From NCBI GenBank assembly GCA_047495785.1, contig JBLDXI010000055.1, forward strand, positions 992,001 to 1,056,000: a stretch of 64,000 nucleotides of DNA. The letters run 5' to 3'. Position 1 is the stretch's first letter. Every line of letters starts with the position of its first letter. This document shows, in pieces, positions 37,483-42,176 of the stretch. A model generated the notes under the pieces. The model was not told where the DNA came from. It saw only the letters and a list, made by a program, of their open reading frames with translations, and ran no database searches. Source of the DNA: Lepidodermella squamata (taxonomy: Eukaryota > Animalia > Gastrotricha). Made by a program: the position numbers and the translations under genes.

Positions 37483-38764
37483 TCAAAATTTGCAGTAGCT
37501 GGAATCTGTTGCAACGCCACACATATTATTAGCATTGCGAGCCACTCGAATGTATCCCTGCTCTCCCCAGCTTTCTCCCCAAGTATTCTTGACAATCCAG
37601 TAAGCCTTAAAAAATTCAAATGTTCAATTCAGGATGATCATAAAACCAGCAGTAACACACCTGTTTTTTGGCTGTTACCCCGTATCCCACAATGGCAGAT
37701 CCATGGTTAGGATTCACGTTGTCGCAACTAGCATCACTGTAGACACCAGACTGGTAAGTCTCAAAACTAGGCTGGGAAGCATCTATCGCGATGGCAACCG
37801 GTCCAACCATGGCGACCGCAACCTGCATATCGGTTTCATTTTTCGAAATAATATCGGCGTACGACGATATTGTGGCAGCGACTTTCGAAGGAATGAAACG
37901 GCATTTCCCATCATTAGCTTCGTAGGGATAGTCGGCTTCAGAATTTATCCCTTTGTTCTTTATGACGTATTCAAATGAATAATCCATGAAACCCCCATTA
38001 CACCTTTGGCAAATAATTTTTATCAGATTATTGATTTTTCGAGAGATCTTGATCAACTAACCCTTGGTTACCAACGGAGGTCGAACAATCTATAAGCTGC
38101 TGAGCTGACAAAGCGATCGCCTGCTTGTGAGTTTGCTTTGCATGCTGACCTTCGATGGCCACAATAGCCCCGAAAGCCCAGCTAGATCCACATTGGCCCT
38201 TAATTAGAACAAATTAATGCTTCATATGCTAATAATGAGCGTATTCAACTTGATCTATGACCGGAGTGACGTAGCCTTTGGTTCTCCAATCAACTGATTT
38301 AGGAAGAGGGGCGCTGGCCCGATCCCAATTGTTAAAGTGATGCTTTAAAGATGTTTTGGCAATAGGACGGCCGATATTATATTTAGCTCTGAATTCTTCA
38401 CGAGTCTATCAAATTAAAAGCAATGCTTTCGGAGGCAATTCATGAATACCAAACAAGCATACCAAATCCGAAAAAGCGTTCAGCCCCATGCGGTAGGTGT
38501 GAATGCCTTGTTCTTCCTCGGCATTATGCTTCTCAATCCTTCGCACTTTACCTTCCCAAATGGAGCGGCTGATGTGTAAAATGAAGTAGAAAACTAAGGC
38601 ACTGAAAGGATTGTATGTTACCGCAATAGCTCCTCTTGTTCACTGGCGTATTGTTTGTTGAACTGTGATTTGTAGTCACCCCATGCAGCGTCAAGGTCAA
38701 TTGAAGTCGCTGCCGCAGCGCAGCAAACTGCAATCAACGCGGTCACTGTCAAACGAGAAATCAT
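37483..38764 (-). CDS. Cathepsin L-like protein 1 with catalytic Cys>Ser (multi-exon)
   Basis: Signal peptide, I29 propeptide, [19 protein letters not shown]|[38 protein letters not shown]. Confidence 0.92.
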
Positions 38765-38964
38765 GCTTTTGCAAATAAATGAAAGAAATGAAAACTAAGT
38801 TTTAATCGGGTTAGTGCACGCTCTATCTTCACTGTTATCAATATAGGGTAAATTATCTGTATCAGCAAAAAAGGAAATGATAGGCTATTTTGGAAAACAC
38901 GACATTGTCCTTGGGAATTTTAAGGTTTTAAGTTCATCATGCTAAAAATGCTTCGATTCGTCTA

Positions 38965-39040
38965 AGGTAATAGAATATTAGGCTACCTCGCCGCACATGA
39001 TGTTAGCGCGTTACGAGCGGATCCAATGTGGCGATTTCAA
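38965..39040 (-). pseudogene. Decayed copy of the last exon of cathepsin-like gene 3
   Basis: cgccgcacatgatgttagcgcgttacgagcg resembles 40944-40971, in the equivalent position after the shared gattcgtct flank. Confidence 0.5.
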
Positions 39041-39369
39041 AATCCAACATTTCTGAATTGCTCGCATGAAGCAGTTGGACGCAATATAGTCAGCATGGAA
39101 ATGAGGAGAGGAAAACGATGATTGGCCAGCAAAATTGACTGAACATCCTGAGAGCGTAGGGCGAGAAAAATCTAACCAAAACCGCAAATGAACAATAAGA
39201 TCGTTGTTCGGTTGAAAAACCTAACTGGCGACCCCATTCATCGACTTATCAGGACATCAGTACTACATGTCATAGGAGAGGTCAACAAAATTGAAAATTG
39301 AATAATTTAACCCATCATAATGTAGCTCAAGGAAATTTATTTGCATCAGCAAATTGAAGGTAAGAACAA

Positions 39370-40654
39370 TCAAAATTTGCAGTAGCTAGAATATGTTGCA
39401 ACACCACACATGTTTTTAGCATTGCGAGCCACTCGCATGTATCCCTGCTCTCCCCAGCTTTCTCCCCAAGTATTCTTGACAATCCAGTAAGCCTTAAAAA
39501 ATTCAAATGTTCAATTCAGGATGATAAAACCATTAGCAGCAACACACCTGTTTTTTGGCTGTTGCCCCATATCCGACAATAGCAGATCCATGGTTAGGAT
39601 CGTTGTTGCAAGTAGGATCACTGTAGACACCAGACTTGTAAGACTGGAAATTTGGCTCGGAAGCATCAATCGCAATAGAAACTGGTCCAACCATGGCGAC
39701 CGCAACCTGCATATCGGTTTCATTTTTCGGAATTATATTTGCGTACGACGAAATCGTGGCAGCGACTTTCGAAGGAATGAAACGGCATTTACCATCATTC
39801 GCTTCGTATGGATAGTCGGCCGCAGAATTTATACCCTTGTTTTTTATGACGTATTCGAATGACGTATTCATCAAGCCTCCGTTGCAACTTGCGCAAATAT
39901 TTGAAAGTTATTACAAAAGACGTTTGTAGAGATTTTGATTAACTAACCCGAAGTTACCAAAAGGACCCGAGCAATCCATAAGCTGTTGAGCAGATAAAGC
40001 GATCGCTTGCGTGTGCGTTTGCTTTGCATGCTGACCTTCGATGGCCACAATGGCACCGAAGGCCCAGCTAGATCCACATTGGCCCTTAATTAGAACAAAT
40101 ATATAATGTCTCATCTATTAATCATGAGCGTATTCAACTTGATCAATGACGGGTGTGACGTAGCCTTTGGTTCTCCAATCAACTGATTTAGGAAGAGGGG
40201 CACTGGCCTGCTCCCAATTGCTGAACTGATGCTGCAGAGATTGTCTAGCGGTTGGACGGCCAATATGATATTTTGCTTTGAATTCCTCATGGGTCTTTCA
40301 AATTAAAAGCAATGCTTTCAGAGTGCATCAAGGCAAATCAAGCATACCAAATCCGAAAAAGCATTCAGCCCCATGCGGTAGGTGTGAATGCCTTGTTCTT
40401 CCTCCGCATTATGCTTCTCAATCATTCGCACTTTACCCTCCCAGATGGACCGACTATGTTAACAAATATATTGGGTTATAGGTATATACGATGAAGGATT
40501 GTATATGTTACCGCGATAGCTCCTCGTGCTCGCTGGAGTATTGCTTGTTGAATTGTGTTTTGTAGTCACCCCATGCAGCGTCAAGGTCAATTGAAGTAGC
40601 TGCTGCAATGCAGCAAACTGCCATCAATGCGACGAAAGTCAAACGAGAAATCAT
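39370..40654 (-). CDS. Cathepsin L-like protein 2 with catalytic Cys>Ser (recent duplicate of 1)
   Basis: [30 protein letters not shown]; introns and flanks alignable to copy 1. Confidence 0.92.
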
Positions 40655-40911
40655 GTTTATGCAATGTAACTAAATGAAAGTAATGAAAAAAATACGATTT
40701 AATTGGGTTAGTGCATGCACTATCTTCACCGCAATAAATAGGAAAACGGGGCAAATAATATGAGTAAATAAGAGGGCAAAATTCGTTATCAGCATAAGGA
40801 AATAATAGACAATTGGCAATTGGCAACATCACAACAAAATCCTTGGGAATTTCAAATTCATGTTAGAATGCCGATGTTCATCATTCTAAAAATGATTCGA
40901 TTCGTCTGTTT

Positions 40912-42176
40912 TCAGCTGTCGCAATAGCTGGAATAGGTTGCCACGCCGCACATGTTGTTAGCGTTGCGAGCGATTCGCATGTAGCCATTCTCACCCCAGG
41001 ACGTCCCCCAGGAGTTTTTCATGATCCAATATTCCTGATATGCGGTCAAATAGGGATCAGTCAATTTGTTAGAGGTAATTTTGTAAGAGAATTACCTGGT
41101 TGTTATCTGTAACACCGTAGCCAACAATAGCTGCGCCATGATTGGTATGCTGGCTATCGCAATTTGTATCGTTATAAATTCCCGATTGGTAATACAAAAA
41201 GTCGGATTGGGAAGTGTCTACAGAGATAGCCACAGGTCCGATGGTCGCCACGGCTATTTGCAGCGCTGTTTCATTGCCTGTGGGAAGATCCCTGCAGTTG
41301 GAAATCTTTGCGCCAATCTTCGATGGGATGAATCGACACTTCTTGCCATCAACCGCTTCGTAAGGATACGCATCGGCCGTGTCTACTCCTCCGTTTTTGA
41401 TCACGTATTGAAATGCGAAATCCTGCTCACCGCCAAGACATCTAACAAAAACTGTTATCAACATGCGAATTGCAGTTAAATATCAAACCCGTTGTTGCCG
41501 AAGGACGCGCTGCAGTCGAGTAGTTGCTGGGCTGATAATGGAACTGCTGAGTTGTGGGACCTCAGAGCCTGCAGCCCTTCGATGACAGCTAAAGCAGAAA
41601 ATGCCCAACTTGAGCCGCATTGTCCCTTCAATTTATAACATGAGTCATTTTCATCCTTAACCCTCAACATACTTGATTGGCAACAGGGGTAACAATGCCT
41701 TTGGTCCTCCAATCCACTGAATTCGGAAGCTTCGTCAATCGACTGCGTAATGGGCTATCGTCGGTTGAAGGAGTTTTTTGACTCGGCATTCCTTGACGGA
41801 AATGGTCCCTGAACTCCGATTCAGTCTGAGCGAAGAAAATTTAGCTGCATTCGAACCTTATAATTTATTTACCAAATCAGCAAAGGCATTTATACCTAGT
41901 CGGTAGGAATAGAGACCTCGCTCTTCTTCCGAATTATGCGCATTTATTTTCCGCAAATTGTTCTCCCAAATATTTCGCCTTGATATGGAAAATAAAATAA
42001 AATTGTTGAAGGCGGTTTTAGCTGATGATTGATTACCGGAGATATTCCTCTTCTGAAGTTGTATATCGTTTGTTGTACTCCGTTTTGAAATAATTCCAAT
42101 CATCATCGCTATTCGTGTATTCTCGAGCAGAACAGCAAGCAATAGCAACAACGACCAAAGCACAAAAGTTTCTCAT
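40912..42176 (-). CDS. Cathepsin L-like protein 3 with catalytic Cys>Ser
   Basis: [33 protein letters not shown] propeptide, [24 protein letters not shown]. Confidence 0.92.

Follow-up and report, generated by a model that had tools for sequence, protein, structure and literature searches.

Three adjacent genes in a stretch of 64,000 nucleotides (nt) of the gastrotrich Lepidodermella squamata (NCBI GenBank assembly GCA_047495785.1, contig JBLDXI010000055.1, positions 992,001 to 1,056,000 of the forward strand; hereafter the window) encode cathepsin L-like proteins in which Ser replaces the catalytic Cys25. On account of this replacement they are, by sequence, non-peptidase homologues of the C1A cathepsin-L-like (ERFNIN) subfamily and not cysteine peptidases. 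The genes are intact, expressed and under constraint, have a single origin, and encode an active-site cleft that is complete save for the nucleophile. We favour, at a level only slightly better than even, the reading that the products are proteolytically inert binders, processed in trans, that buffer the substrates or the inhibitors of active cathepsins.

The nucleophile motif reads GQCGSSWAF in all three copies. The Ser is encoded on the minus strand by AGC at 38181-38183 in copy 1 (codon 141), AGC at 40067-40069 in copy 2 (codon 141) and AGT at 41608-41610 in copy 3 (codon 139), as an earlier note, made from the letters of the window, had reported. The substitution is not due to chance, as this column is Cys in 100% of 147 Cys-type relatives. 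The other residues of the site, Gln19, His159 and Asn175 in papain numbering, are kept in all three copies, and their codons also lie on the minus strand: the oxyanion-hole Gln at 38250-38252, 40139-40141 and 41673-41675 in copies 1, 2 and 3, the catalytic-position His at 37703-37705, 39590-39592 and 41138-41140, and the catalytic-position Asn at 37585-37587, 39472-39474 and 41014-41016. The residue before the His is Asn, in place of the usual Asp (N-H-G). The catalytic-position Asn stands in the context KNTWG or KNSWG, and the Trp that follows it is retained throughout, as is the Gly-Gly substrate-binding strand.

The three conserved disulfides are intact (Cys at mature positions 22, 57, 66, 99, 158 and 208). 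The proteins end in SSYC plus two residues, with the extra Cys encoded at 37492-37494 in copy 1, 39379-39381 in copy 2 and 40921-40923 in copy 3, all on the minus strand; 95% of Cys-type relatives have Pro in this column. The mature part thereby holds seven cysteines in copies 1 and 2, an odd number that leaves a potentially free thiol, and eight in copy 3. The eighth Cys of copy 3 is at mature position 114 (ISNCRD, codon near 41300), and it could pair with the extra C-terminal Cys of the family (mature position 218). The Gln, His and Asn, the signal peptide, the propeptide and the SSYC end are thus all as the earlier note had described them.

Each copy is an intact gene of six exons, and the three lie head to tail on the minus strand, as read from that strand and checked by script. 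Copy 1 (37483-38764, minus strand, 335 amino acids) has exons at 38764-38622, 38568-38463, 38405-38250, 38198-38062, 38003-37661 and 37605-37483. Copy 2 (39370-40654, minus strand, 334 amino acids) has exons at 40654-40512, 40453-40348, 40294-40139, 40084-39948, 39887-39548 and 39492-39370, and copy 3 (40912-42176, minus strand, 334 amino acids) at 42176-42037, 41978-41873, 41825-41673, 41625-41489, 41441-41096 and 41034-40912. All 15 introns have GT..AG ends and lengths of 47-61 nt, exon positions are homologous across the copies, and each reading frame has one terminal stop and no internal one (script). Pfam searches with exon pieces place Inhibitor_I29 on exon 2 and Peptidase_C1 (PF00112) on exons 4, 5 and 6; both domains were matched in copy 1, and C1 in copy 3. 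The N-terminus is hydrophobic in all copies, and each is predicted to encode a signal peptide followed by an I29 propeptide and a whole papain-fold domain. The propeptides carry an ERFNIN-type motif (E-x3-R-x3-W-x2-K/N-x3-I-x3-N, with W replacing F in all copies and K replacing N in copies 1 and 2) and the GNFD motif (G-x-N-x-F-x-D). By PDB sequence searches, the mature part belongs with cathepsins S, K, L and V.

Four public sequencing runs were compared with the window over 37483-42176, a comparison in which contigs cannot rank expression levels. Contigs of two of them, X2 and X3, which come from different studies and carry different organism labels, skip stretches with the plus-strand ends CT..AC that are exactly the predicted introns. 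Spliced joints were found for introns 1, 2 and 4 of copy 1 (X2 and X3 contigs; X3 record 17 joins exons 2-3-4), for introns 2, 3, 4 and 5 of copy 2 (X2), and for introns 2, 3 and 5 of copy 3, plus a divergent joint at its intron 1 (X2). The loose ends of X2 contigs contain the SMART complementary DNA (cDNA) oligonucleotide/adaptor, for example in copy 2 at 39332, 38 nt beyond the stop codon, which identifies the X2 library as cDNA. Since cDNA contigs skip the predicted introns, all three copies are transcribed and correctly spliced (in X2; copy 1 also in X3). The earlier note had proposed expression as a check on its reading, and there are spliced cDNA contigs for every copy. It had also pointed to Cys codons (TGC or TGT) in reads as evidence that would count against it. 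At copy 3 the Ser codon is matched exactly, because X2 record 13 covers 41489-41624 with no differences; for copies 1 and 2, no difference at the Ser codons is among those listed (40 of 98).

The contigs of a DNA run, X1, behave differently within 38600-40840 of the window. They join 38889 to 40833, skipping 1943 nt, and also contain jumps backwards, one leading from 39363 to 37483 and another from 40478 to 38610, with a few unmatched letters. These joints could reflect hybrid copy-1/copy-2 alleles or copy-number variation by unequal crossing-over. An artefact that the 1.9-kb tandem repeat produced in the assembly graph is just as likely a source. The matched sides are short (21-38 nt).

At the protein level copies 1 and 2 share 86% identity, and their introns are 64-88% identical. 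Their non-synonymous divergence (dN) is 0.071 and their synonymous divergence (dS) 0.423, giving a dN/dS of 0.17 (Fisher p 2e-20), which is not near 1, the value that the earlier note had named as unfavourable. By region, dN/dS is 0.20 in the pre-pro part and 0.15 in the mature domain. Copy 3 is much more diverged: it shares 53-55% protein identity with copies 1 and 2, at a dN of 0.36-0.39, its introns are at random-level identity to theirs, and silent sites are saturated (proportion of synonymous differences 0.82-0.86). Among the coding differences listed between the window and the other runs (40 of 98 differences listed), 22 are synonymous and 7 non-synonymous, and three of the latter seven fall in the variable linker of copy 3. 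The family is under purifying selection, and its members are maintained genes and not decaying copies.

The origin of the substitution was examined with a maximum-likelihood tree of 56 proteins, comprising the three spliced models, named animal cathepsins L, Capsaspora, environmental sequences and nucleophile variants; the set holds no silicatein. The three copies form one clade (support 100/98) on a stem 0.47 long, within the animal cathepsin-L radiation. Because they form one clade, a single old Cys-to-Ser change is the simplest account; at the level of codons this would be one ancestral TGY-to-AGY transversion and a later silent C/T change. The single clade and the saturated silent sites of copy 3 together make it most likely, as the earlier note had proposed, that the change predates the split of the copies and was kept. 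The sole neighbour of the clade in the tree, at weak support (88/89), is a chiton protein whose nucleophile position holds Pro. This protein (P0076) was rejected as a close relative since it sits in a 7.3-kb long-intron gene of Liolophura. A high-ranking sturgeon protein labelled 'UNVERIFIED_CONTAM' (P0155) was also rejected, being a mis-assembled fish cathepsin.

Close relatives were not found elsewhere, and no match went beyond about 55% identity as measured on exon 5. A search with exon 5 against 1.84 billion cluster representatives returned 9018 relatives, none above 54% identity. When exon pieces 4-6 of all copies were placed on a full-length relative and turned into a profile, a search of 5.8 billion proteins recovered only ordinary cathepsins L, with Cys at the nucleophile in all 118 of the best alignable full-length matches. 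A metagenome scan with exon 5 found no relative, and a full-text literature search for GQCGSSWAF found no paper. As far as public data show, the family occurs only in this animal and in the closely related sample X2.

Replacement of the nucleophile as such is less exceptional than the earlier note had implied. Across the 150 nearest representatives (about 135 domain segments, of which 20 matches fell short of the nucleophile column), this column is Cys in 101 segments and Ser in 9; Gly occurs twice, and Pro, Glu and Thr occur once each. Ser is found in predicted proteins of a fish (Prochilodus magdalenae), a beetle (Molorchus minor) and a mite (Oppia nitens), Gly in a crayfish (Procambarus clarkii) and a butterfly (Vanessa atalanta), and Pro in a chiton (Liolophura sinensis). 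All of these keep the Gln, His and Asn, except the second domain of the mite protein. As Gly and Pro variants also keep the three residues, their retention does not prove catalysis. A further Ser clade, from metagenomes and metatranscriptomes (P0041, P0137 and P0032), reads GQCGSSP, with Pro and not Trp after the Ser; it is well supported and branches separately from the trio. None of the other natural nucleophile variants is close to the trio (at most about 50% identity), and the trio clade stands apart from those included in the tree, the weakly grouped chiton protein excepted. Substitution of the nucleophile in cathepsin-L homologues is, on these alignments, a recurrent event.

What distinguishes the family further was sought in the 112 alignment columns with at least 85% conservation among the 147 Cys-type relatives. 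The conserved residue is kept in all copies in 79 of these columns and in part of the copies in 18, and it is changed in all three in 15. In the mature numbering of copy 1, these changes are K17 to I or A, C25 to S, T31 to I or L, G32 to V or A, L46 to A, S48 to A or P, E51 (the Glu50 equivalent) to A, V136 to I, S159 to D or N, L163 to P or T, D164 (the Asp before the His) to N, V167 to S or A, L168 to A, I210 to V and P217 to C. Papain itself has hydrophobic residues at 31 and 32, hence not every change in this signature is exotic. In papain, Lys17, Glu50 and Asp158 modulate the thiolate-imidazolium pair, and the joint neutralisation of their equivalents would make sense once the ion pair had gone. 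The idea that Cys-to-Ser generally brings with it a missing Glu50 equivalent and a missing Asp before the His was checked across natural Ser variants and proved true only in part: the environmental Ser clade has lost the Glu (and partly the Lys), but the fish, beetle and mite Ser proteins have not.

Together these data are best accommodated, in our view, by the following sequence of events. In this lineage-specific family, one old TGY-to-AGY change would have turned Cys25 into Ser, after which the family was kept by selection. The signal peptide would direct the products to a secretory or endolysosomal route, and they would fold with an intact I29 propeptide. With a papain-fold cleft complete except for the nucleophile, they would cleave peptide bonds at no useful rate and would not activate themselves, so that active cathepsin paralogues would have to trim the propeptide in trans. 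The cleft of the mature protein would then hold substrates or cystatin-type inhibitors without cutting them, and such binding would buffer or direct the activity of the active cathepsins. The earlier note had suggested a pseudoprotease or a neofunctionalised family, and expression, purifying selection and the single clade all fit that suggestion.

Two observations weigh against an inert binder. Many of the 15 family-wide changes flank the Ser or the His (those at K17, T31, G32, the Glu50 equivalent, the Asp before the His, and the V and L after it), a pattern that looks like a rebuilt site and not like simple loss. The auxiliary catalytic residues have also been kept over a very old duplication, which would fit a working Ser-His-Asn site as well, although their retention is not diagnostic.

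The proteins might instead be permanently locked zymogens that never activate themselves and act in their pro-form, either as stored or structural secreted proteins or as carriers of an I29 domain that inhibits active cathepsins. We regard this as unlikely, though it is the strongest of the alternatives. It would account for a propeptide that is intact in its ERFNIN-type and GNFD motifs and constrained between copies 1 and 2, and it has experimental parallels, since engineered C25S procathepsin V required added active enzyme to become activated (PMC10124925) and the pro-form of an inactive schistosome cathepsin B paralogue showed no auto-processing (PMC7054455). The mature domain, however, is at least as constrained as the propeptide (dN/dS 0.15 versus 0.20) and its cleft residues are kept, a constraint that would be needless if the cleft were plugged for good.

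A working Ser-His-Asn hydrolase is a still more doubtful proposition. In such an enzyme the neutralised charges would leave the His as a general base, and an activated, possibly non-peptide substrate would be hydrolysed or transferred. Gln19, the His, the Asn and the Trp after it have survived in all copies a duplication old enough to saturate silent sites, and family-wide changes adjoin both catalytic positions, where K17, the Glu50 equivalent and the Asp preceding the His have all been lost; the environmental CGSSP clade has likewise lost the Glu and, in part, the Lys. The silicatein mutants S26A and H165A are cited as having lost activity on TEOS (work cited in PMC6233156). Against this, Cys-to-Ser mutants of cysteine peptidases are invariably inactive (PMC4671257), the Ser-His geometry of silicatein is an inactive one (PMC7733841), alanine mutants of the triad still form silica (PMC6233156), and the auxiliary residues are equally kept in Gly and Pro variants. 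It seems to us improbable that the trio represents a working Ser-His-Asn site invented by animals on the papain fold for a second time, independently of silicatein. Were it so, the charge losses at K17, the Glu50 equivalent and the Asp would have re-tuned the His from ion-pair partner to general base, and the proteins would be hydrolases or transferases for a non-standard substrate, themselves perhaps tethered to a partner or matrix by the conserved extra C-terminal Cys.

The earlier note had also named mineralisation, and a silicatein-type protein that condenses silica or another oxide would have the same fold and the same nucleophile substitution as the trio. Silicateins carry a Ser-rich cluster just before the His. 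As the earlier note had already remarked, the trio has Trp after its Ser (G-S-S-W) and no such cluster. The sequence before its His is rich in D and N. The flanks of its Ser differ from the G-A-S-Y of silicateins, and the Ser does not speak specifically for such a role, given that silica is also precipitated by ordinary cathepsin L (PMC6233156). We saw no link to silica and nothing else that points to mineralisation, and consider this role very improbable. That the genes are decaying duplicates or an assembly or sequencing artefact has next to no probability: the odd X1 joints between copies 1 and 2 and the fact that run differences are known from 40 of 98 listed could be read that way, but the three copies use two different Ser codons, their frames and splice sites are intact, cDNA shows them spliced, dN/dS between copies 1 and 2 is 0.17, and an independent cDNA contig matches copy 3 at the Ser codon.

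The trio is embedded in a same-strand tandem array of major facilitator superfamily (MFS) genes that are monocarboxylate-transporter-like, at 28356-29717, 33256-34344, 35862-37244, 42314-43987 and 44806-45954 (all on the minus strand). The spacing to these neighbours is very tight: the upstream MFS open reading frame (ORF) stops about 138 nt before the ATG of copy 3, and the next MFS gene starts about 280 nt after the stop of copy 1. Elsewhere the window holds a full-length metazoan signal recognition particle RNA gene (20561-20855, plus strand; Rfam RF00017, 178 bits) and large exons of an NPC1-like gene (14761-17938, plus strand) that encode the NPC1 N-terminal, middle luminal and sterol-sensing domains. 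A sodium:solute symporter ORF has homologues at 46-61% identity across many phyla, none of them close. For a 609-amino-acid ORF (6716-8545, plus strand), a search of 5.8 billion proteins found no homologue at E 0.001. Its product also lacks any Pfam domain; it begins with a signal-like N-terminus and its C-terminal tail is hydrophobic.

Among known proteins, engineered human cathepsins share the active-site motif of the trio. The top PDB match of exon 4 is a human cathepsin L chain that reads GQCGSSWAF, and the next are engineered C25S mutants of human cathepsin V (QCGSSWAF). Engineered C25S forms of human cathepsins L and V (for example PDB 5I4H, 7Q8K and 7Q8G) share the motif (G)QCGSSWAF, the fold and the subfamily with the trio. 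In such mutants, peptides are held substrate-like in the cleft and remain uncut, and removal of the propeptide needs an added active cathepsin (PMC10124925). They differ from the trio in being laboratory point changes, while the substitution in Lepidodermella is natural and old and is accompanied by 14 further family-wide replacements, including the one that creates the extra C-terminal Cys.

Among natural proteins, the experimental precedent for a decoy or regulator comes from a schistosome. Trichobilharzia regenti TrCB1.5 and TrCB1.6 are inactive cathepsin B paralogues in a tandem family, with Cys replaced by Gly (PMC7054455). An inactive paralogue of this kind is highly expressed, is processed in trans by active paralogues and binds cystatin (PMC7054455). 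The differences from the trio are the cathepsin B subfamily and Gly in place of Ser. In Plasmodium, SERA5, which has a Ser-type papain-like domain, is abundant and essential and acts non-enzymatically (PMC4671257). According to Stallmach et al., no cysteine-peptidase scaffold is known in which significant activity survived the replacement of Cys by Ser (PMC4671257). SERA5 is, however, a large multi-domain apicomplexan protein of an unrelated lineage, whereas the trio proteins have 334-335 amino acids and consist only of signal peptide, I29 and C1.

The earlier note had likened the trio to silicateins and testins, and beyond the shared substitution nothing supports kinship with either; on the sequences the link is one of analogy only. 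Rodent testins are secreted cathepsin-L-like proteins with Ser for the catalytic Cys and a non-proteolytic role, and they arose by a rodent-specific duplication of vertebrate cathepsin L. To our knowledge there is no plausible case for their orthology with any invertebrate family. Like the trio, silicatein is derived from cathepsin L, has Ser at the nucleophile and keeps the His and Asn (PMC6233156, PMC7733841). The G-A-S-Y around its Ser is conserved in silica-condensing proteins, silicateins included (PMC6233156), and in this the G-S-S-W of the trio is unlike silicatein and resembles an engineered C25S cathepsin. Cathepsin chimeras were first reported to condense silica only once S-C-W had been changed to A-S-Y. 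Later work showed that silica is formed even by ordinary cathepsin L, as found by Povarova et al., and by mutants with alanine in the triad (PMC6233156). In the crystal structure of silicatein from spicules, the Ser-His pair is in an inactive geometry (PMC7733841).

Set beside these systems, the trio is a well-documented new example of a kind of substitution that is known and recurs in animals, and it introduces no new principle. Dead or re-purposed protease homologues are common and few of them are well documented; this case is unusually clean, with three paralogues of one old origin, constraint, expression and distinct active-site changes. It offers a natural test of whether Cys-to-Ser on the papain fold can ever yield chemistry, a point disputed for silicatein and SERA5, or whether such proteins always act as binders and decoys.

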